Assembly (NCBI GenBank): GCA_964247055.1
Contig: OZ176053.1
Coordinates: 6,200,001 to 6,264,000 of the forward strand
Source of the DNA: Paragordius varius
Taxonomy: Eukaryota > Animalia > Nematomorpha
DNA: 64,000 nt
Direction: 5' to 3'
Part shown: piece by piece, positions 1,860-39,729 of the stretch
Position numbering within the stretch: the first letter of the stretch is position 1
Layout: each line of letters opens with the position of its first letter
Notes under the pieces: model-generated
The model's database searches: none
Told to the model about the DNA's origin: nothing
The model's input: the letters and a program-made list of their open reading frames with translations, nothing else
Translations under genes and position numbers: made by a program

Positions 1860-3337
1860 AAAGTTTCTATCAAACTATTTCGACGCTATTTTCACAACAT
1901 TTTTGCAAAATAATGTATGTATTTGATTTAAACGCTAATTAAAGCTAATTTTTTATTTGGATCACATCTAACAAGGATAGAAACAGAAGAAGTGGTTTAT
2001 TTTGTATTATTATTAAATTAAGCTATTTCACATACATGCTGACTAAATTTACCTTAACATTTCGATTTAAATTAGGGTATCTAAATATTATAGACTATAT
2101 TTAAGTTGAGATTTTTTAAAAACTGAAAGAAACGGTCCCAATAAAATTAAATATATGCCTACCTAAAAAATTGTATAAATAGCTGAAATAACTAAATAAA
2201 ACTTTACTTTGAAAAAAAGTCTCATATCAAACTACTGGACGCCATTTTAAGTTTACATTTTTCAAAATATCCTATTAACACTTGGATACAACACACTCAT
2301 TTTAGTCCTTCTAAGGGTAGTTGGATACCCCAGGCCTGTTTAAGATCAAATATTTTAAAAAGTATGGAAGCAATCGGACCCATGGCAAAATTTTGCACTT
2401 ATATAACATTAATAAACCGAAATATATAAAAAATTCTATTCAAAAATACTTGATATTACATATTTTAGGCTAAAACCGAAAGGTAAAAATTTCGTCAACG
2501 TGACATGTGTGAAATAGCAAAATTTAAAAATAATACAATATAAACCGCTTTTTCTATTTCTATCAATGTTAGATGTAACTTAAATAAAAAATTAGTTTAA
2601 TTTTGTCTTTAAAATTACATGAAGACGATATTTTGCAAAAAAATTTTAAAATAAAAATGGCGTCGAAATAGTTTGACATGGAACTTTTTTTTCAAAACAA
2701 TTTTATTAAGATCTTTTGACATATTTATACAATTTTTATTAGGATAGAAGCATAAATTTAAATTGCGACCGTTTCCTTCACTAGTTTTTTAAAAATCCTA
2801 ATTAAAATTTGGTCTGGGGTATTTAGATACCCCAATTTGAATCGGAGTGTTAATTTAATTTTAAAGCTAAAATGAAAGTTAAATTTTCATTTAAATCACA
2901 TCTAACATTGATAGAAACAGAAACGTGGTATATTTTGTATTACTTTTAAATTTAGATAATGCACATATGTCATGATGACTAAGAGGGTATCCAGAAAATA
3001 AGTAATTTCAAGTGTTTTTGAATGAAATTTTTTATATATTTCGGTTTATTAATGTTATAAATGTGCAGATTTTTGCCATGATGTCACATTACATTTTTTT
3101 AAATTATTTAATTTTAAACAAGCCTAGGGTATCAAATTATCCGAATTTGAATCGAACTGAAATGAGTGTGTTGTAACCAAGTGTTAAAATGAGTAATATC
3201 AAGTATTTTTAAATGATTTTTATTTTTCTGTTCATTAATGTTATATAAAAGAAAACTTTTACCATAGTTTTACTATATATCATTTTTAAAATATTTTTAA
3301 ACAGTCTGGGGTATCTAACTACCCGACTTTGAATCGA
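1860..3337. repeat. Cluster of nested/inverted fragments of the TTAA MITE family around one intact copy
   Basis: Minus-strand pieces of the family (e.g. AAACGGTCCC, GACGCCATTTT, GGGGTATCTAACTACCC) at ~1860-2270 and ~2870-3337 flank the intact copy at 2279-2849. Confidence 0.8.
2279..2849 (+). mobile_element. piggyBac-type non-autonomous element (MITE), ~570 bp
   Basis: TTAA|CACTTGGATAC... to ...AATCGGAGTG|TTAA. TTAA lies on both sides (2275-78, 2850-53), there are subterminal inverted repeats, and at least 6 other copies occur in the window. Confidence 0.85.
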
Positions 3338-3609
3338 ATGACGGAAACGAATTCCTACTTAGTATTATCGCTTGATACCCATATAGACGACGAATGAGAT
3401 TGCTTATGATGTGAAACCAGGTTGGTTTAATAATTATGTTTAATAATCAAAATATTTGTATTTTGATATAAAAACACAAACTCTACATGTTTAATTGATG
3501 GAATTGGATCTGTATTGGATTAATTAAATATCAACAATTTTCCGATCATCAATAGATTTTTGAAGTTAATTTTATGTTCATTCGCAAATTAGTATGATTG
3601 TTTCATTTG

Positions 3610-3804
3610 ATGTTCAAATTTTTGGTAAATTAAATTATCTAATTTTAGATAACATTTACACTGGGATTTTATAGTGGAGTTTATGTAGCTCAAAATTATA
3701 ACGTATAATTGATTTATATTTTTTAGATACCATCAGTATCGGATCCAAAAGAATTATATAAAAAATTAAAAGATTATTTAGATAGACACAAAAAAGACAA
3801 ATAA
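3610..3804 (+). CDS. STMP1: Short transmembrane mitochondrial protein 1 (STMP1/C7orf73-like); exons 3610-3624, 3649-3702, 3727-3804; 48 aa
   Basis: Removing two 24-nt GT-AG introns (3625-3648, which holds an in-frame TAA, and 3703-3726) gives MFKFLITFTLGFYSGVYVAQNYNIPSVSDPKELYKKLKDYLDRHKKDK*. The G-x-Y-x-AQNY-x-IP motif followed by a charged helix matches human STMP1 (GMYLAQNYDIP). Absent from the ORF track. Confidence 0.85.
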
Positions 3805-3809
3805 TTAAA

Positions 3810-4055
3810 ATGGGTGGATGGAAACTGGAAGCTTTTAGAGCTGCTCTTTATATATTTTTCCCTATAACTGTATTTTATTGTGCGAATCATCCCTACTTTT
3901 CCGATGAATGGGAAAATTTTTTTCGGAATGAGATCGAAAAAGATAAAGATAAGCAAGGCGCAAAAAATATTCACCAATTAATTTCTAATCTGGAAAAAAA
4001 GGATATGGAAAAATGGGAAGTTTTAGTACATGAACACATTAAAGCTAAAAAATAA
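3810..4055 (+). CDS. PET100: Cytochrome c oxidase assembly factor PET100 homolog, single exon, 81 aa
   Basis: The N-terminus MGGWKLEAFRAALYIFFPITVFYCAN aligns to the PET100 signature (human MGVKLEIFRMIIYLTFPVAMFWVSN), followed by a charged helical tail. Confidence 0.88.
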   Translation: MGGWKLEAFRAALYIFFPITVFYCANHPYFSDEWENFFRNEIEKDKDKQGAKNIHQLISNLEKKDMEKWEVLVHEHIKAKK

Positions 4056-5472
4056 ATTTTTTTTTACATATATTTTATTAAATAAATATCCATTAATATA
4101 TTTGGTAAAATTTCTATTATTGCTTCTAATTTTTTGCCATACCACCTTTGGTTGGGCTAAAGGCGATTTTTGTTCATTTCCCCTTTCTTTAAAAAAAGTT
4201 ATCTACATTTTTAACAATATATATCAAATTCTTTGACCAGTTTTACTGTATTATCAGTTGTTTTAATCATATAAATATAGATTTGTTATTCTTTTCATGT
4301 TCACAATTTAATTATTTTCATCTAAACTCTTTAAATGTTATTTAAATTCAAATGGCAATGTTTGGGAGCTGAACATCATTGTTGTGCAAAATCATTGTAA
4401 ATTAATTGTACATTACTTATAAAATATTTTTGCCACATAACCATTAGAATTTTTATAATTTACCAACTATTATAAAATAACATGTGCATTACAACTCTAA
4501 AAGATGCTGAATTACCTCTTAATATTGACATTTATCTTAATCATACCTACTTCTCTTTCTTCACGACCAATTTTTTTATTTATTCACCCGCATAGTGTTT
4601 CGTACCATCGCTCATATTTTTTAACCAGTCAGAATATATAATTATTCTACATAAAGAAGAGAAACTTATTTATTGTACGACATTTTAAGCAATTTTCTTT
4701 TAACAATACCTGGTTCATTATGACTGACAATCCTGAAGAATTTTACATTGGGTAAACGGTGATTGTTTTACATTATTTTCCCCAATTTTATGTACAAATA
4801 TTCCCCATATCTCGCCCATGGTATTTCATCACCACTTTTATATTGATTGAAATGGCATGTAATTTCACTATGATCCATAGCCTAACTGCAGAGATTGGAG
4901 AGATAGTGAATTGTCCAGGCAAAGATCTCAATTCGATTCTTTTTCCATTATTTTTGCATCATTGTGGTAAACTAGCTAAATTTTATAGCTCAAACCCTCT
5001 TATGTGTTTTATGCACCATTATCTTAAAAATATCTATAAATAAATTGCCCTTTTATTATAAATATTATCATCCGTACCCGCAGCTTTATCATGGACTCTT
5101 TGAAAACAATCGAGTTTTTAATGATATTTTAACTTCTGCAGAATAAGAAATTATTGGTAATATATCATTTCTCAGTCAAAAAAACGTTTTTTTAGCATTT
5201 TCCCAGTCAACCAAAACGTTTTTCAATCGATACGTTTCCCCAGTCAATAAAAACGGTTTTATTTTTAATGATAAATATCGAACAAGATGCAAAAATAACT
5301 TTTAACCATTACAGCGTAATATAAGCATATTATATTTTATTTATAAAAACACAATTATTGAATGACAATTTTTCTAATACCATTAAAGCGTTATATTTTA
5401 CAGTATTTTATATAGATATTTTTAAGAAAATATTATATAAAATTATTCAAATCCTAATTTATATAATACATA

Positions 5473-8672: not shown

Positions 8673-8910
8673 ATGAGCTCTCAAGACACTTTGAAGAAAC
8701 CATTTAAAACACCGCTTAAAGAAAATAAAAACGCTAAAAGCCATAAATAACCCAAAAAACTCCCACTCAACCAGTCAATACATGGAATTATTGCATAAAT
8801 ATAATGATTTAAAAGATATAGGAACATTACTTTTTGGAGAATTGGCAAAACTAAGAGGTGTATCGATTAAAGATATTTATGAAGAATATGATATGAATTT
8901 ATCTGATTAA
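8673..8910 (+). CDS. SWI5: DNA repair protein SWI5/Sae3 homolog; N-terminal ORF 8673-8750 and Swi5-domain ORF 8782-8910 are offset by +1
   Basis: 8782-8910 encodes MELLHKYNDLKDIGTLLFGELAKLRGVSIKDIYEEYDMNLSD*, matching human SWI5 LHEYNDIKDVGQMLMGKLAVIRGVTTKELYPEFGLDMND. The upstream ORF MSSQDTLKKPFKTPLKENKNAKSHK* ends at TAA 8748-50. No GT-AG intron can bridge the two ORFs. Confidence 0.85.
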
Positions 8911-10236
8911 TCATTGTATCTTAAACAACCAAGCAAAATTTCTAATTAAATTAGCTTCAAATAAATTTAGTTATAAGAAGAGATTTTAGTTACGGCATAT
9001 ATTAAAAATAAATAATTAAGCTTTATTATTATCCATCAAAAACTACACAATTTAACTAGACTCATCAACCCCTTATCTACTCTAAAGGATGACAATCAGC
9101 ATAGAAGTCTGAGTGTTAGGTTTGACTAGATCAGTGGATAAAAATATTTATCTTCTCTTGAGGGCCGTACACCTTATAATACTGATAAAAATATACTAGC
9201 TTAACACATTTGCAGATATTTATACTCGAAATAAGTAAATAATCAATTCAGGTCATAAACAAGCAGTTTTAGGGCCGCTGTCTGAGTCTCACCGGACTCG
9301 ATGATGAAAGATATCGCTTTATAATCAGTCAATTTTCTGTACATATGAAAATATTTTGTAAAGAAAATTATACAATGGTACAATATTTAAATTTAATATA
9401 AAATAATTGCAAATCTTGATGATTTCAAAATTAAATATATAGTTTGGGCCAATTCAAAATTATAGATTCTATGGCCTTTAAAGCACAACCAAAAAATTAG
9501 AATATAAAAATATTCTCCTCTCAATCATTACAACGCCAAACTTTTTTTAAACTGCAAACAACTAGTATATATATTTGCAAACCTATTAACTTATATTTTA
9601 ACGCCATCCTTCAAAAATCAGGTTTTTTGTAGCAGGTTAAAACTAAAAAGACCATGATAATCCTAATATTTTCCTATCAGATATATATTTCATCAGGATA
9701 TTTTTTTGTGGAAACTGTGTAATATACCACACCGATGGGGTAAAAACAGGCAAATTTTAATTTTGTAGTGCGTTTAAGTTCAAATTATCTGGTCACATTA
9801 ATATATGGAATGTTTGATTATTATTTAACCAAAATAATATATAGCTGAGGCAAAAGTGCAATGCAGTTTAAAATGAATTCGATTGTGAGAAAATTAACAA
9901 GGGTCAGAATCAGCATCGTGTTAATTATATTAAATATAATTTAAACAAATATTTGAAAACAAATAATAAAAATGGTTATAATAATTTTTTTAGCTGTTCG
10001 AACGATTACATTTTAAATTAGGGCTTTATCAGAAAGGTGGAAGATTAGCAGTGGGAGCTAATTAATTACTCCGTGTTTTTTATAAAGCTCATTATAAGGG
10101 GCATATTTATTTTACAGAATTATATATCATAGTTTAAATTTATTGAAATAAAATATTAAAAAATTTATCGTAATCAATTAAGTTTTAAAGATAGTTTTAA
10201 ACACAGTTTCAACAATCTTATCCACCAACCCCACCT

Positions 10237-10422
10237 TTAGGCGTTTTCTGTGGCATCAGTTGTTGATGTTGCCGAATGTTGAAGCCAAAACGTATGACAA
10301 CTTTGGCAATCTGCATTGTAATATGTGGTTTCATTACACACTGCTGTACAATTATATCTTCCATCAGCGTACGTTCCCAAAATTATCGCTATAAGACACA
10401 AAATATGTAAAATATAAATCAA
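10237..10422 (-). CDS. Possible small Cys-containing secreted/membrane peptide (5' end unresolved)
   Basis: A hydrophobic stretch (IYILHILCLIAIILG) is followed by CxxxC...CxxC and N-glycosylation sequons (NCT, NET). The ORF start is TTG, not ATG, so an upstream exon would be required. Confidence 0.3.
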   Translation of the reverse strand: MIYILHILCLIAIILGTYADGRYNCTAVCNETTYYNADCQSCHTFWLQHSATSTTDATENA

Positions 10423-10846
10423 TTTCCAATAAGCTTAAGTTTATTGACCGGGTAAAAGTTACACCAATTCTAATTGCTTGGAATTCTTTCTGATTAGTAT
10501 AATTGGTGATATTTGTTGCCGCAGAATAGAAAAAAATAACCGCTAAACTATGAAAAATGTCAATAACATTTGTAATTACAAACAGATAAAAAATAATTAT
10601 TAAATTTTACTTTTTTATTTTATTTGATTAACAAATTCTTTTATAATCTTGTTCTCATAAGTCACGTCTTAATGATACGTCATAAATAGTCAGAACCGCG
10701 TGAAAAAGAAATGGAAAGATTCAAATAAAAAAATTTTAATTATTATTTTTAAATGCCAATATAGGCAGTGTTAAACTACATGTATTACGGAAAACATCAA
10801 TAGTTGTATAACATAGTAAAGTTTGAAATAATCTATATACTAGTAA

Positions 10847-13106
10847 TCTATATATTTATAAAAACGGAAAATGCTGGCTTTGTGATCTGTTTCCGGAAAA
10901 CCGGTAGACCCATTCAAATCCAAATTTCAAAAAAATATAATCATTAATGAATGCACCGAAAATAGCTTCGCCCTTTTTTGAATTAGGCCCCCACTTCGGG
11001 TCCACCCCGTGAAAAAAACGGTTTTTTTAAAAAATAGAAGTCCACAAAAATTGTGTCTTTGAGACAATTTTCCGGAAAACGTGTTGGACCATTCGATTTC
11101 AGATATGATTTTTTTACTTATATTCGATTGCGCCAAACATAGTCGGCTCGATTTTTTAATTTAGGTCGTCTTATTACCGGCTCCCCCCGTAAAATGCCAT
11201 TTTTTCAAAAAAATAAGTACACAAAAATAATTTTTCAAATTTATTTTTCACCCAAAGTATAAGACCATTAAAATTTTAATAAGGATTCCAGCTATTACCT
11301 GTTAAAAGGCCAAAATTTTAGCTAAGTGTTTCTTTGATGATAGCTGGTGGATAAGGAGATACCCGCTAAAAACTGACCCGTTTTATCGAAACACCGTGAC
11401 TTTGGGGCTAAATTTAAGAAAACCTATCAGGCCATATGAGTTCAATAACTGCTTAAAATATTACCCGTAAAAAGTCAAAAATTTAAGTCAAGCGGATTTT
11501 CTATAATAGCGGTTAAATAGGCCCTTTATGCCCTAAAAAATGCGCTATCATTGAACTATTTAGTTTTGAAGTCATTCTTTTATAAACTATTAAGAACATA
11601 TGGAATGTATGATGATTCCAGGTATTCCCGTATAAAGGCATTTTTTTAACTACATTTTTATATTGGCCTCTGGGTAGGGGGCTACCCGCACTGCGCCATC
11701 ATATTACAGCATGCCTTTGGAGCCAAATTTCAAAAAACCTCTCAGGCCATGTAAGTTCAATAACTGCTTAAAATATCACCCGTAACAAGGCAAAAATTTG
11801 ATTTGAGCGGTTTTTTTAAATTAGCAGTTAAATAGGCCCTTTACGCCCTAAAAATGCGCTATCATCAAACTATTATTTAGTTTTGAAACCATTCTTCCAA
11901 TATTAAGAGGATATGGAATGAATGATGATTCCAGGTATTTTTATATTGGCCTCTAAGTAGAGAGCTACCCGCTTTAAACTGGGCCACCATATCAAAATTG
12001 CGTTATTTAGGAGTTAATTTTCAGAAATCAGGCCATATATGTTTTATAAGGGCCTGAAATATTACCTTAAAAAGCCAAAAATATACGCGGAGCGGATTTT
12101 TTAAATTAGCGGTCAAATAGGCTCTGGGTAGGGGACTACCCGCGTAAAAGTACATCACTATATCGATACAGCATGCCTTTGGAGCCAAATTTCAGAAAAC
12201 TTATAAGACTATGTGAGTTCAATAAGGGCCAAAAATATTTATTACCCCTTAAAAAACAAATATTTTAGTATAGGGGATTATTTCAATGAGTCGCTAAGAA
12301 AAGTTTTACGCCCTGGAAAATTCGCCGCCCTAGAACAATTTTTTGGTTTTAAGCAATATTTCCAAGAACATATAGGAACATATGGACATTATAATTCCAG
12401 ATATTCCTCATATAAAGACAAAAAATTTGCCCAACGCTTTTTTATACCTGCCTCTTGGTAAGAAGCTACCCGCCAAAAACTGTGCCACTATATAGAAATT
12501 GCGTTGTTTTGGGACTAATATAAAACACATGCCATATGAGCTCATTTAAAGTTCGAAATATTACCCGTAAGGTAAAAATTAAGTTCGGGCCTTTTTTATT
12601 AGCCGTTAATTTGGGGCCTTTATGCCCAAATACGCCATCATATAACGATTATTTAGTGTTAAGACATTTTTTCGAATAACCCATGAGACGATGATCTTAA
12701 AGATGATTCCAAATATTTTCCTTATAAAGGCAAAAAATTTAATTTAGTGCTTTTTTCATATAGGCCTATGGGTAGGAGTCTACCGGTTAAAACTGAGACT
12801 CCATACAAAAATGGCGTGGTTTTGGAGTTAATTTTTAAAATTAAGAAGCCATACGAGTTCAATAAAGGCTTTAAATATTATCCATAAAAAGGTAAAAATT
12901 ATAGTATAGCCGTCAATTTGAAGCCTTTACACCAGTAAACAATATATTAGTATGAATGCACCGTTTTGAAAATCCTATGACATCATAGCTATTAAATAAT
13001 GTCGAAATAATCTACATATATGGATTATTTTATTGTTCCGTTTCTCAAATATCCCCCAAAAGTCCGAAGTTCCTCGGGCTGCGTAGCAGCACGAGATTTA
13101 CGCTAG
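10847..13106 (+). mobile_element. Non-autonomous Helitron with internal ~300-bp tandem array
   Basis: 5' A|TCTATATATTTATAAA. The 3' end has a GC hairpin CTCG-G-GCTGC-GTA-GCAGC-A-CGAG (13073-95), then 7 nt, then CTAG|T. It is inserted between A and T with no TSD. The landmark (G)CTACCCGC recurs at ~11379, 11682, 11965, 12137, 12466 and 12780. Confidence 0.85.
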
Positions 13107-14032
13107 TAATAATATAAATTATTTTAAAAAATACCGATATGAATTTAATTTAAATAATTTTTTAAAATTTTTGCCTGAAAAAGAGAGTGGCGGTTCCCTC
13201 CTATTTGATTTATAATTGTTAGATTAAAGGAATGCAGGTTTTAGTTAATTAAGGAAAAACTTATCAATGTGAACGGCGCTTGATTTTCCGGGGGAGGGTG
13301 GGAAAGTGTGCAATTTTAAACATTAATTTTGGGAAATTGAATTCTACGCATTGCTCATTTTAATGATTCAATAATTTTTTGACATATTGTTAATACTAAA
13401 AATAAAATACTAGGATGAATCATAAAAATAGTTTAACCCTTTGACCGATCCGTGCCCATAACTCGCCGATGGCGTTCCGATGTTATGTTAGGCGGGTTTT
13501 AGGTTTTTAGATTATTAGGTTTTGCTCGGTTTGCCACAACAAATAAATGCTATACGCATAAAATACAGTCCTAATTCATTAATATGATCATCCGATAATT
13601 TTTTAAAACAGCAAATTGTACAGAAGGAAACCATTAATTTACTTACTTGCATAAAAAACTGTTCTATTATTTTGAACTCATTTGTTGTATAAATTATTTT
13701 TTATAGATATTCATTTAGTACTTTAACTTAACTTGTATAGTAATCAATAGATTTAGTATTTGCCTCATTTCCAATTTTAATAATTTTGACTCGCAATAAA
13801 ATTTATAGAAAATATTTGCCTCCAAAGAAGACGAATTCATTAAATAAGTGCCCATGCGCGTTAAGGTTCAGACCTTTCAATGCGGTTCTTCTAAGTTGTG
13901 TATCTGAACAAATGTAACTCAACATAATATAGATCAGTTTTGACATTTATTTTTATATGTTAACAAATCATATAAAAAAATAATTTTTTTTTATTTAATT
14001 ATTTCATAAGTTAATAATAGTGACTGTGGTAA

Positions 14033-15989
14033 TCTATGTATTTATAAAAATGCTGGCTTTGTGATCTGTTTCCGGAAAACCGGTAGACCCATTTAAATTC
14101 AAATGTGGAAAAAAATAATCATTAATGAATGCTCCGACAATAGCTTCGCCCTTTTTTGAATTTGGCCCCTAGTTCAGACCCTCCCCGTGTCAAAAACGTT
14201 TTTTCAAAAAACAGTAAGTCCATAAAAATCGTGTCTTTGATATAATTTTCCGGAAAACATGTTGAACCATTCAATTTCATTATGATCCGTTTTTACTTTT
14301 TTTCGATTGCGCCGAACATCGGCTCGCTTTTTTAATTTACCCTCTTTTTACCCGCTCCCCCCGTAAAATGCCATTTTTTTCAGTCCACAAAAATAATTTT
14401 TGGATCTATTTTTCGCCCAAGGTATGAGACCGTAAAATTCAATGAGGATACCAGATATTCCCTGTTAAAAGAAAAAATTTTAGCCGTGCGTTTTTTTATA
14501 TTGACTGCTGGGTAAGGAGATATCCGCTAAAAACTACCCCGTCATATCGAAATAGCGTGCCTTTGGGGCTAAATTTCAGAAACCTATCGGGTCATATGAG
14601 TTTAATAGGTGCTTAAATATTACCCGTAACAAGGCAAAAATAGGTCGTGCGGATTTTTATAATTAGCCGTTAATTATCCCTTCACGCCCTGAAAAATGCG
14701 CCACCATAGAATGATTTTTTGGTTTTGAGGCAATTTTTCCAAAAACTCATGAGAGCATATGGAATCAATCCTGATTTCAGGAATTCTCCGTAAAAAGGCA
14801 AAAATTTTAATCAAGCGCTTTTTTGTATCAGTCTCTGGGTAGGGAGCTACCCGCCTAAAACTGCGCCACCATATCGAAATTGCGTTGTTTAGTTAATTTT
14901 CAGAAAACTTATCGGGCCATATTTGTAAGGGTCTTAAATATTACCCGTAAAAAAGGCAAAAATTTAAGTCGAACGGTTTTAATAAATTCGTTAATTAGGC
15001 CCTTTACGCCCTAAAAATGCGCTATCATTAGGCTATTATTTTTGAAACCATTCTTCCATATTAAGAACATATGGAACGAATGATGATTCCAGGTATTTCC
15101 CTATAAAGGCAAAAAATTTTATCGAACGTATTTTATATTTTGGGTAGGGGCAACCCGCTTACAACTGCGCCACCATATCGATACCGCATGACTTTGGACG
15201 CTAATTTTATAAAACTTATCTGGCCATATGAGTTCATATGGTCTTGAAATATTACCCGTAAAAAGGCAAAAATTTAAGTAGAACGGTTTTATTTAATTAC
15301 CCCTTAATTAGTGCCCTGAAAATGCGGCACCATAGAATTGCGACAATTTTTCGAATATCACACGAGAGCATATGGAATCCATGATTCCAAGTATTACCCG
15401 AATTAAGGTAAAAAATTTAATCGAGCGTTTTTTTGTTTCGCCCCCGAGGCTACTCACACAACATGCCTTTGCAGCCAAATTTTAGAAAACCTATGAGACT
15501 ATGTGAGTTCAATAAGGGCCAAAAATATTTATTACCCCTTAAAAACAAATATTTTAGTATAGGGGGTTATTTTAATGAGTCGCTAAGTAAAGTTTTACCC
15601 TGAAAAATGCGCCGCCATCGAACAATTTTTTAGTTTTGAAGCAATATTTCCAAAATCTTATACGAACATATGGAATTTATGAAATTCCAGATATTCCCCA
15701 TATAAAGACAAAAATTTTGCCCAACGCTTCCTTTATACCTGCCCCTGGGTAAGGAGCTACCTGCCAAAAACTGCGCCACTATATAGAAGCGTTGTTTTGG
15801 AGACAATTTTCAAAAATCTTAAGAAGCCATACCAGTCTAATAAAGTGAGCCCTTTTATTCAAATAGCGGCTTGGCAGGCTCCAACTTAAATTATCATGTT
15901 TAACACGGTAAAAAACTTAATACACAAAAATTTATTAGCAATTTTAATTTAATTAAATCAACTGCTGGCTTTCTGATCTGTTACGCTAG
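14033..15989 (+). mobile_element. Second copy of the same Helitron family, 3' end rearranged
   Basis: It has the same 5' end (A|TCTATGTATTTATAAAAATGCTGGCTTTGTGATCTG) and a colinear array to ~15830. TTACGCTAG|T occurs at 15981-15990 without the hairpin. Confidence 0.75.
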
Positions 15990-17441
15990 TTGTGCATAAA
16001 AATGAATGAAGTGTCTGATTAATATTTATACATATTTATATTCCTCGGGCGCCTTGTTACATAATACAAACTGTATATAAGGGCATTGATCAGAATTTAA
16101 GGCATTCTACTGTTCTTTAAATATTTTAGGGACTAAATTGTAAATTTTAAAGGGAAATCGTTTTTATAGCTTATTCGATGTGTACCATATAAATATTCTA
16201 TTACTCGAATTCTTTAGTATATAATATGAAGTTGTATAATTTTTTATTTTCTTCTCCCTTTATCAAATACACCCATAAAAAAGTTTTTAGTTATGAAACA
16301 TGATAGTATTAAAAACTTAAATACAAATTTTAAATTGATCACCAATCCTAGTAAATATTAATCATCACAATTGAAAAAAATAAATTATCAATCCTGTTTG
16401 ACTTATTTCCCTTTATGGTTAACAACAAAATTTGCAAATAAAACAAAATAAAAATCAAAAAAATACCACAAAAGAATATAAGAAAGATTGAAAATTTCAT
16501 TGTTTTGAAAGGCAAAAAAATAAAATGATGATTATCCTCAACTTAAATAGTTTGAGGTTATATTATTTTCGTCTCATAAGTGGACTAGGATATGATAAAT
16601 TACCAAAAAAGCATTAAAAATATAATTGTGACAGTAATTATAAATTTTAACAAAATACATAAGCCATTACACACATTTATCTTTTACACCTAATAATAGG
16701 AATTTAAATTAGGACGATAATTATATAAATAAATAATTCTATAGAGTTTTTATTTGATCGTATTGACTATGTATATGACTGTAAAAGGGTAGTCAGAAAA
16801 TAAAAAAATATACTAATTTTTTTAGTATTACTAATTTAAATTTTAAATAGGCCTGGCTAGATTAAAAGAAAAAAAACGTTATTTACATTTTTTTATCAAA
16901 AATAATCGAATAGTTTTCCAAATTAGGTAATAAAATAATAATGAAAAGGGAACACGCGTCAACTAATATTATATTCAAATATTATATAAACCTCATCTTA
17001 AAACAATATAATTTAAGGCGTAAAATTAAAAAAAGATATGAATCCAATTTTATTTATATTTAATGATGCATAATAAACATCCTCATATTTTGCTTTTAAT
17101 AAATAAATATATTTTTAATATAGGGTGACCAGACGTCCCACTTTTTCAGGATTATATTAAAAAAATTTTTATATGCATTTTAATTTTTTATAAAAAATTT
17201 ATTTTTTTATCTGTTTAAATTTTTTATCATTAGTTTTCTTTAAAATCAATATCAATTTTAAATTAAATTAAATTAAAAATATTTATTTTTTTCGAATTTA
17301 TATCCTATGATTATACACTTTGCTTCCTACTCTGCCAACTTTACCAAAAAGACAAATTAATACCACAAATCGGTAGCTTATACGTTTACACCAGATAATT
17401 AAGGTAATAAAATATTTTTTTACTAATATTAGTTTAAAAAT

Positions 17442-36902: not shown

Positions 36903-39385
36903 TTAAGCAGCAGCAAATTCGCAATTAGGGGCAATGTGTCCAAATTTATTACAGTTGTAACATTGTTTGCACGAATCAGCACTATGTCCAGTTCCGGAAC
37001 ATCTTTATAATATTAATACATAAATATAATAATCATCTCTACACTCCCACCCTAAGCTTGTTTAAAATCATATATTTTATAAAATGTAATAAAACCTTTC
37101 CAAAGGTTTGCACTTATATAACATAGTTGCAGCGAACTTTAAAAAAAGTATTTGTTAAAATAACTTTTAATATTTCTTTCATAAATAAACAGGCAATTTG
37201 ACGTGGCATGCATTAGCCAAATTTAAATGCAGATAAACCCTTCCTTCTGTCCGATAATTTGATAAAAAATGTGGTATGGTATATGGTTTTTAAAAACTGA
37301 AATCAAGGCAGAAGCGTAAATTTTACATATATCAAAATATATATTTCGTTTATCCAAAAATTTCATATATTGACTGCGAGGATGAGGTTTTTCTATATTT
37401 ATACATTTATGGTTTTAAAAAATTAGTTTAATATTTTTATATAGGGCTTCGGTCGCTTTATTCGATATATTTAAAACATTATGTATATTAGGTTTATTGG
37501 TTTTTGATAGACTCGAACTAAATTAAAAGGTTCGTTTAACAAACTTTGTACGCTAATAAAAGGGAGAAAATTGTTAATTTTACTGCATTTATAAATATTT
37601 ATACAAACATTTTCTATTTAACACCTTAAACAATGATAAATTAAATCCAATAAAAGAGGAAAAAATGCAATGGTATTATACTTTGTACAAATCATGTCAT
37701 CCACATTAGCTGTACAGTCACGAGCAAAATGTCCCCTCTCGTGACACTTGTAACATTCTACCGGGGCTCTGGGACTCGCCGCGCCCACATTGTTGGGACA
37801 ATTGCGATTAATGTGCCCAGTTTCTCCGCAACTGTAACACACGCGGTCAGCTCCCCCACCTCCACCAGGACTCATAGCGCTCTGAGGACATTCTCGACTT
37901 AAATGGCCCGGCTCATTACAGCGATAACAGACTCGTGTGTCTGGACCTCCGGATCTACCACCAGCACCACCTCGTCCTCCATATCTAGGAATGTTTACAA
38001 AAAGTTTGAGTGTTTATTGGATTAAAATTTAAAGCGTAAATTTTATTGCATTTAATGTATGAAAATCATGTTGAAATAATAGTTTGGATATAAAACCCAT
38101 TGGAAGCAGGTTTGTCCGGACAAGCTCTAGCAATGTGTCCCGTTTGGTGACAATAATAGCATTCGCGCGTGTCAAATCCATTTCCGCCTCCGGCATCATT
38201 GCCCGGGCCAGCGGAAGATGTGCAATCTCGGGCAAAATGGCCAGATTCACCACATTTAAAGCATTTATCATTGCCGCTGTTGTTGAATCGCCCTCCACCA
38301 CCACCGGCATTGTATCCACCACCGTTTTCAAAATCTTGACCACCTATGTAGAAATCAAATAAAATGGATTAGTACCTACGCATTTTTATGTGCGTTTTCG
38401 TTAAAAAAAAATTTTGATATCTGTTTGGCTTATTTATGGTATTTTTCAAGAGGCTGTAATATATTTTTATAATAGTAAACAATTTAAAAAATAGGGCTGA
38501 TATTATAAAAATTTTTTAAATATAATTCCTATAGGGATAATCAAAATAATGTTTTTTCAACAATTTACAAAATTCTAATACCATCTTCGTAATTCTTGTT
38601 GTAAGGTTGACGTCCCCGACCACCTTTTCGCTCCCACCTTGGTTCAGTACAGTTTCTACTTGTGTGATCAGTTTTCCCGCAATTACGACACTTATCCTCA
38701 ACAAAAGTTTCCTCGCAATCCCGGCTAAAATGTCCAGGTTTGTTACAATTGTAACACTAAAATAATAGATTATGCGTTATACGATTTGTTATTCGTATTA
38801 TTAAAATTTAAAAAATACTATTTTTTCTTTCGGTGCTCCGGCATCAGGACATTCTCTGGCCAAATGACCTGGCTTGTTGCAGTGATAACAGGGTCTTTGA
38901 GAACTTGGATTTCCACCACCTGCACGAGTATCTTTGCAATCACGTTGTACGTGACCAGTTTTTCCACATTTAAAGCAAGCTAAAACAAATAAAAATATTA
39001 AGAGATTTTATGCGTGCAATCAAAAAAAGATTTAAAATAATTTACTTGGAGGACTACGTTCACCGTTACCATTAGCTACATTAACTTCTGTACAATTCCT
39101 GGCTAAATGACCCATTTTGTTACATTTGTAACATTTATCTCCCTCTTTACAATCGCGTGCGAAATGACCACTTTTATTACATTTATAGCATTTATCTATA
39201 AATATTAAAAGTTTAATTCATGATCAAGAAGTAAAAAAACAAAATTAAAAAATACCTTGACTGCGATTATCAGATCCACCTTCAGGTCTCCTCCCACCCG
39301 TTCGCATTGGTGGCTTAGTATTAGTACTGGTGCAATTCCGGCTCATATGCCCAGATTTTCCACATTTAAAACAACTGCTACTCAT
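36903..39385 (-). CDS. CNBP: CNBP/GIS2-like CCHC zinc-knuckle RNA-binding protein with RGG tracts; exons 39385-39256, 39195-39046, 38979-38819, 38756-38582, 38343-38097, 37984-37682, 37002-36903; 421 aa, 14 knuckles
   Basis: It starts MSSSCFKCGKSGHMSRNC (human CNBP MSSNECFKCGRSGHWAREC). Seven exons are phase-consistent, with 14 C-x2-C-x4-H-x4-C motifs and GGRG linkers. Confidence 0.88.
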
Positions 39386-39729
39386 AATTCCTCGACTCGA
39401 TCAATGGCTTAGCAAATCACAACACACACAAAATGGCGACAAGATTAAAATGTGGTGTATGAATTGCCAATACGCATTTGAATTTCAAAAAATAAAATTT
39501 ATTATTTTGCTATTATTTAGCAAAAAATAATTAATTAAGGCTTTTCGGGGTAACAAGTGAGCCGAGATCATATCAATAATTAAAAAACAATTGAAAAAGA
39601 CGGTTTATTATTTGCTATCTTAACAAAAATTATATTAACGAGCCAAATTATCTAAAATGTAGTTTTGTAAAATCAAACTAAAGGCCATTTTATTTAAAAT
39701 TTTAATTTGATTTTAAGGCAGAAAATCTA

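Follow-up and report, generated by a model that had tools for sequence, protein, structure and literature searches.

Can two very small genes that nearly abut on one strand be expressed from one mRNA? This question is raised by a locus of the horsehair worm Paragordius varius, which lies in a 64,000-nt stretch of its genome (hereafter the window, to which all positions refer). Here, a gene of the STMP1 family ends five nucleotides upstream of a gene of the PET100 family. The first-pass annotation, made from the sequence by itself, had proposed that both proteins are produced from a single mRNA by leaky scanning or reinitiation, and had described the pair as a mini-operon for cytochrome c oxidase biogenesis. 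The features of the locus, in order of position, are as follows.

3594–3596, forward strand: upstream ATG, out of frame with STMP1, A at −3
3610–3624, forward strand: STMP1 exon 1 (MFKFL) with the start ATG at 3610, from sequence reading and scripted splicing
3625–3648, forward strand: putative STMP1 intron 1, 24 nt, GTAAAT..TTTTAG, from scripted splicing
3649–3702, forward strand: STMP1 exon 2, 54 nt, transmembrane part, ending in YVAQNYN
3703–3726, forward strand: putative STMP1 intron 2, 24 nt, GTATAA..TTTTAG
3727–3804, forward strand: STMP1 exon 3, 78 nt, with the TAA stop at 3802–3804
3805–3809, forward strand: spacer TTAAA between the cistrons, 5 nt, free of AG; together with A3804 it makes ATTAAA
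3810–4055, forward strand: PET100 coding sequence, 81 aa, intronless, with the TAA stop at 4053–4055
4051–4056 and 4081–4086, forward strand: two AATAAA hexamers, the first canonical ones after the STMP1 stop; the former overlaps the PET100 stop

The 48-aa product encoded by the three STMP1 exons matches the Pfam family PF15054 (DUF4535, the STMP1 family) with 52.5 bits at a cut-off of 28.3. After removal of the introns, residues 5–47 align in one unbroken stretch with positions 2–45 of the 45 positions of the profile. Since the match extends to the very last profile position, the TAA at 3802 is the true stop codon. Intron 1 must be removed in order to connect the sole in-frame ATG with the STMP1 domain, and both introns end in TTTTAG acceptors with pyrimidine-rich tracts (9 and 11 pyrimidines in 15 positions). 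Furthermore, intron 2 differs in another haplotype by a 2-nt insertion and a SNP. The insertion is located exactly where the model places intron 2, and only non-coding sequence would tolerate such a change. We infer that both 24-nt segments are spliced out. Elsewhere in the window, a G-patch-type gene (32036–32279) is interrupted by three GT..AG segments of 20–25 nt, which fall into one micro-intron class together with both STMP1 introns. An ORF finder applied to the locus returned PET100 only and missed the spliced STMP1, in agreement with the earlier remark that the two 24-nt introns hide this gene from such programs.

The downstream gene is read without interruption. Its 81-aa ORF scores 52.1 bits against the Pfam family PF09803 (Pet100; cut-off 24), residues 1–68 aligning with profile positions 1–68 of 73. 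In an alignment with 12 other animal PET100 proteins, M1 and the N-terminus MGGWKLE coincide with the initial residues of these proteins; consequently, 3810 is the true start and an upstream coding exon is not needed. Six residues are invariant in this alignment, namely M1, E7, Y14, F17, P18 and N26. The conserved features of the family, i.e., the MGxWKLE N-terminus and a membrane segment with Y14, F17, P18 and N26, are all present. PET100 is an assembly factor of cytochrome c oxidase (complex IV), and the protein encoded in the window is predicted to act in complex IV assembly, based on its family membership.

Re-reading of the sequence and scripted splicing reproduced the junction as first reported, with the STMP1 TAA at 3802–3804, TTAAA and the PET100 ATG at 3810 following each other on one strand. 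Two matches above curated family cut-offs that are located 5 nt apart on the same strand are not explicable by chance. The claim that the genes leave no space for a 3′ UTR or a promoter between them was likewise upheld, as the spacer comprises 5 nt, contains no AG, and the first AATAAA is found at 4051. No canonical AATAAA is present in 3400–4050, and the hexamers at 4051 and 4081 are the likely common 3′-end signal of both genes. A splice acceptor at the junction was searched for as well: AG is absent from 3797–3809, and the nearest one (3795–3796) is located within the STMP1 coding sequence after a purine run. Exon 3 of STMP1 contains six AGs in total, with purine-rich upstream tracts; the five closest to PET100 have 3–7 pyrimidines in 15 positions. 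Since TTAAA offers neither an acceptor nor space for a 3′ UTR or a promoter, every complete STMP1 mRNA must extend into PET100. A fusion of both proteins by readthrough was considered and rejected: PET100 is in frame +2 relative to STMP1, and the tail following the TAA consists of 20 unrelated residues and a further stop codon.

Support for the locus and its variants was taken from contigs of public DNA runs (X1, X3 and X4), in which the introns are present and spliced joints do not occur; run X5, presumed to be RNA, contained nothing of the locus. One contig of run X1 spans 3543–3935 with zero differences from the window, and one of run X4, from another individual, bridges the junction (3772–3961). 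The stop-to-start junction, therefore, does not stem from an assembly error. In a second haplotype, STMP1 and PET100 together show seven coding SNPs, all of them (7/7) in third codon positions and 6/7 synonymous. The single SNP in STMP1 (position 3735, exon 3) is synonymous; PET100 has six, again exclusively in third positions, five of which are synonymous, and the sole amino acid change is N36 to K. By simple arithmetic, random hits would all fall on third positions about 5 times in 10,000. The non-coding DNA directly following PET100 shows 7–9% divergence between haplotypes as well as indels, which amounts to a very high heterozygosity: in one individual, the two haplotypes are about 15 substitutions and 3 indels apart within the 200 nt that follow the PET100 stop. 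In run X1, the haplotypes are identical over 3543–3935 and are 18 letters and 3 indels apart over 3962–4259 (298 nt). As the SNPs of the coding sequences are confined to third positions while the non-coding flank has diverged, we conclude that STMP1 and PET100 are both under purifying selection.

How ribosomes could reach both cistrons was assessed from the start codons and the RNA between them. STMP1 starts in the context TTTGATGT and PET100 in TAAAATGG. The former is weak (T at both −3 and +4) and the latter strong (A in position −3, G in position +4), both ratings being such that they may not reflect the consensus of the species itself. Between the two starts, the sole ATG is an ATG-TAG at 3683–3688 in exon 2 of STMP1. 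This is not a significant depletion, given that one ATG is the commonest outcome of synonymous resampling (57% of samples). A weak AUG followed by a strong one, with a single AUG-UAG in between, would fit leaky scanning. If transcription starts before 3594, the good-context ATG at this position would open an ORF of 18 codons in the spliced RNA, overlapping the STMP1 start, and would complicate this scheme. Among 200 shuffled versions, 197 are more structured and fold better than the junction RNA itself, and an Rfam search of the junction matched no family. Accordingly, an IRES-like element is unlikely and nothing is present which would obstruct a scanning 40S subunit. In viral termination-reinitiation, a UGGGA complementary to the 18S rRNA is found shortly upstream of the restart site, nearer than 124 nt. 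With regard to such a TURBS-like element, the stop and start of the pair are within a few nucleotides of each other, and the only UGGGA precedes the PET100 AUG by 124 nt, counted on the spliced RNA.

The reading that we favor, at a probability of roughly 0.55, is that STMP1 and PET100 belong to a single transcription unit giving rise to a dicistronic mRNA from which both proteins are made. It is the most economical, best supported and most likely of the explanations considered. A promoter upstream of 3610 would drive a pre-mRNA through STMP1 and PET100, which would lose both 24-nt introns and be polyadenylated downstream of one of the AATAAA hexamers (4051 or 4081), resulting in a dicistronic mRNA of about 450–500 nt. 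Ribosomes recognizing the weak STMP1 AUG would synthesize the 48-aa inner-membrane microprotein, and those scanning past it would start at the strong AUG of PET100. By a second, non-exclusive route, ribosomes which have terminated on the 48-codon STMP1 ORF might resume 5 nt further on and initiate PET100. In this respect, the anatomy of the junction supports the original proposal of one mRNA, and the AUG contexts would fit its translation by leaky scanning. Its gloss as a mini-operon for cytochrome c oxidase biogenesis had to be dropped as an overreach. STMP1, also named mitolamban, is tied in the literature to complex III and not to complex IV (PMC8833175; PMC13303939), so that a label naming cytochrome c oxidase is too specific. 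The pairing looks like a means of expressing a very small gene rather than like a functional operon.

Several rival explanations were weighed against this reading. Both proteins might originate from separate, overlapping mRNAs, with a PET100 transcription start inside STMP1 (in intron 2 or exon 3) and with STMP1 mRNAs that either terminate inside PET100 at a weak signal or share its 3′ end and leave PET100 untranslated. The DNA is compatible with an internal PET100 start, and being AT-rich, it offers many initiator-like sites. The ATTAAA at 3804–3809 could direct cleavage about 15–25 nt into PET100 and, in this way, might terminate some STMP1 transcripts there, on whichever explanation. However, a promoter would have to fit into 200 nt made up of exons and introns, the STMP1 mRNA cannot end before PET100 begins, so that the two units would overlap anyway, and neither the weak-then-strong order of the AUGs nor the exact spacing of 5 nt would be explained. 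We regard separate mRNAs as unlikely, albeit as a possibility to be taken seriously. Alternative splicing from one promoter appears improbable. In this case, the donor at 3624/3625 or 3702/3703 would be joined to an AG of exon 3, for instance at 3780–3781, which would destroy STMP1, leave a very short uORF before PET100 and provide one protein per mRNA. The TATTTAG at 3775–3781 is similar to the TTTTAG acceptors of the STMP1 introns, but the poor pyrimidine tracts of the candidate acceptors (3–7 of 15) speak against their use and the scheme is purely conjectural.

A nematode-type operon must be discussed since the species is a horsehair worm and, thus, belongs to the sister group of nematodes. 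In nematode operons of the SL2 type, genes on the same strand are co-transcribed, mitochondrial genes being frequent among them. Such operons need an intercistronic 3′-end signal as well as a trans-splice acceptor, and their mRNAs end up monocistronic. If the locus in the window worked like this, a polycistronic precursor would be cut and the PET100 mRNA would receive a trans-spliced leader. However, the 5-nt spacer holds neither signal: TTAAA has no AG, and there is no space for an upstream 3′ UTR. Trans-splicing at the nearest AG, which lies inside the STMP1 coding sequence, would delete the STMP1 stop codon. A spliced leader has not been reported for Nematomorpha in the searchable literature, which weighs little against the idea. 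Taken together, we consider processing of this type very improbable, and the dicistronic mRNA is preferred.

Known two-protein genes were compared with the locus. The Drosophila gene sloth1/sloth2 is bicistronic and encodes orthologs of human SMIM4 and of C12orf73/UQCC6-like peptides; its cistrons are separated by a 5-nt spacer, a weak Kozak sequence is followed by a strong one, and leaky scanning was demonstrated by reporters (PMC9681215). The first-pass annotation had named this gene as a precedent for dicistronic mRNAs in animals. The comparison proved apt, since spacer length and the order of weak and strong starts are the same (PMC9681215). In both pairs, two small mitochondrial inner-membrane peptides share a strand but not a reading frame, the stop of one cistron and the start of the next being exactly 5 nt apart; by its Kozak context, the upstream start codon is rated poor and the downstream one good, and a link exists to the assembly of respiratory complexes. 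In contrast, sloth1 and sloth2 are paralogs which both act on complex III, whereas STMP1 and PET100 are members of two families that are not related, one linked to complex III and the other to complex IV. Further, mRNA and leaky scanning are experimentally established in the fly, whereas the worm pair is known from its DNA sequence. With somewhat better than even odds, we assign the pair to the bicistronic smORF genes of animals of the sloth1/sloth2 type, based on two conserved ORFs on one strand and the 5-nt spacer.

Bicistronic loci which are translated by leaky scanning have also been described in green algae (PMC7896298; PMC11291117), and a PET100 ortholog is part of such a locus in Auxenochlorella (PMC11291117). 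The algal loci resemble ours in that the upstream ORF is short, with a weak start, and the spacer is tight, and they are enriched for small mitochondrial proteins. They belong to another kingdom, however, and STMP1 is not named as the partner of algal PET100 in the text consulted. The algal cases are based on long-read RNA and mutational tests, whereas for the worm pair the DNA is the source. Finally, a polycistronic transcript of vertebrates carries an upstream ORF for STREMI, a paralog of STMP1 (PMC13303939). As predicted here for STMP1, STREMI represents a microprotein of this family as the upstream cistron of an mRNA for two proteins. In contrast to the pair in the window, STREMI is restricted to vertebrates, has another downstream partner and originated by retroposition (PMC13303939). 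Hence, both the PET100 and the STMP1 family recur in bicistronic or upstream-ORF arrangements. The pairing of STMP1 with PET100 is not known to have been described; in the searchable literature, we found no report of it, and a single paper mentions the two proteins, without connecting them.

Sequence collections were searched for homologs and for conserved adjacency of the two genes. Word-index homolog searches for PET100 and STMP1 both came back blank, and an exact look-up of the PET100 protein of the window yielded no identical record. An exhaustive phmmer search with PET100 produced 25 matches, the best being 40% identical and the named ones all belonging to arthropods, which is in keeping with an ecdysozoan but is no more specific than that. 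A profile search gave 208 matches, the named ones including arthropods and molluscs. By none of these four approaches (exact look-up, word-index, phmmer and profile search) was a horsehair-worm PET100 found in the protein collections. In total, 26 PET100 loci of other organisms, none of them horsehair worms, were inspected, which correspond to 27 locus records, as the louse Menopon gallinae was included with flanks of 3 kb and of 10 kb. Seven loci, among them that of Menopon gallinae, were obtained via exact look-ups of phmmer matches, and eighteen originate from metagenome contigs. An STMP1-like sequence beside PET100 was present at 0 of these 26 loci, and in the louse STMP1 is absent within 10 kb of PET100. 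Conserved adjacency of the two genes, which had been suggested as a check, is absent from these loci and, thus, conservation lends no support to the pairing. The N-terminal extension of P0009 was examined as an STMP1-like candidate and discarded, being merely an extension of the ORF from a GTG. Synteny with the louse locus was rejected as well, as the sole additional match is a zinc knuckle of a retrotransposon. The reverse strand of the window carries a CNBP-like gene (37600–39400), whose roughly ten CCHC zinc knuckles are distributed among several exons; it is a cellular gene, unlike the retrotransposon Gag knuckle matched in the louse locus (L027).

The window has a G+C content of 25% and also holds a gene for an aminergic-type receptor; the DNA flanking STMP1 and PET100 is repeat-rich and gene-poor. 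Two adjoining copies of a short high-copy repeat occupy 3012–3375, ending 235 nt before the STMP1 ATG. The summed contig depth over this repeat is 20,000–74,000, compared with 600–1,000 in the unique flank, and a relative is located at 31123–31386; the repeat looks like a family of the MITE/SINE type. Run X3, which is labelled as a different organism and belongs to another study, matches the locus over 3200–4500 letter for letter at a depth of only about 5x. A parasite present in the sampled host would be in keeping with this, as would an error in labelling. At 8675–8910, a SWI5-like small gene is found, whose first ORF ends with AAATAA and which continues in another frame. From 10000 to 16000, the G+C content rises to 31–36% due to repeated units with recurring pseudo-peptide motifs, which are not genes.

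If confirmed by RNA, the locus would be a new animal case in which two conserved microproteins of respiratory-chain assembly are made from one mRNA, and it would join unrelated families in the 5-nt architecture of sloth1/sloth2. STMP1 is invisible to standard annotation because of its first exon of 15 nt and its introns of 24 nt, and its stop lies 5 nt ahead of the next start codon. Consequently, gene sets of this lineage will miss genes of this kind, and tiny genes missed in this way may be reported as false gene losses. The pair might even be one example of a genome-wide habit of horsehair worms. In this tentative view, which we hold to be rather doubtful at present, dozens of very small genes would be placed stop-to-start before unrelated genes and be coupled to them by termination-dependent reinitiation, with spacings from overlapping to 10 nt; introns of 21–26 nt would have masked the upstream genes from gene finders, so that the habit went unnoticed. 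If true, this would parallel, at the level of translation, the operons known from nematodes, to which horsehair worms are the sister group. The locus poses a testable question, namely how genes are co-expressed in the sister group of nematodes in a layout without obvious trans-splicing.
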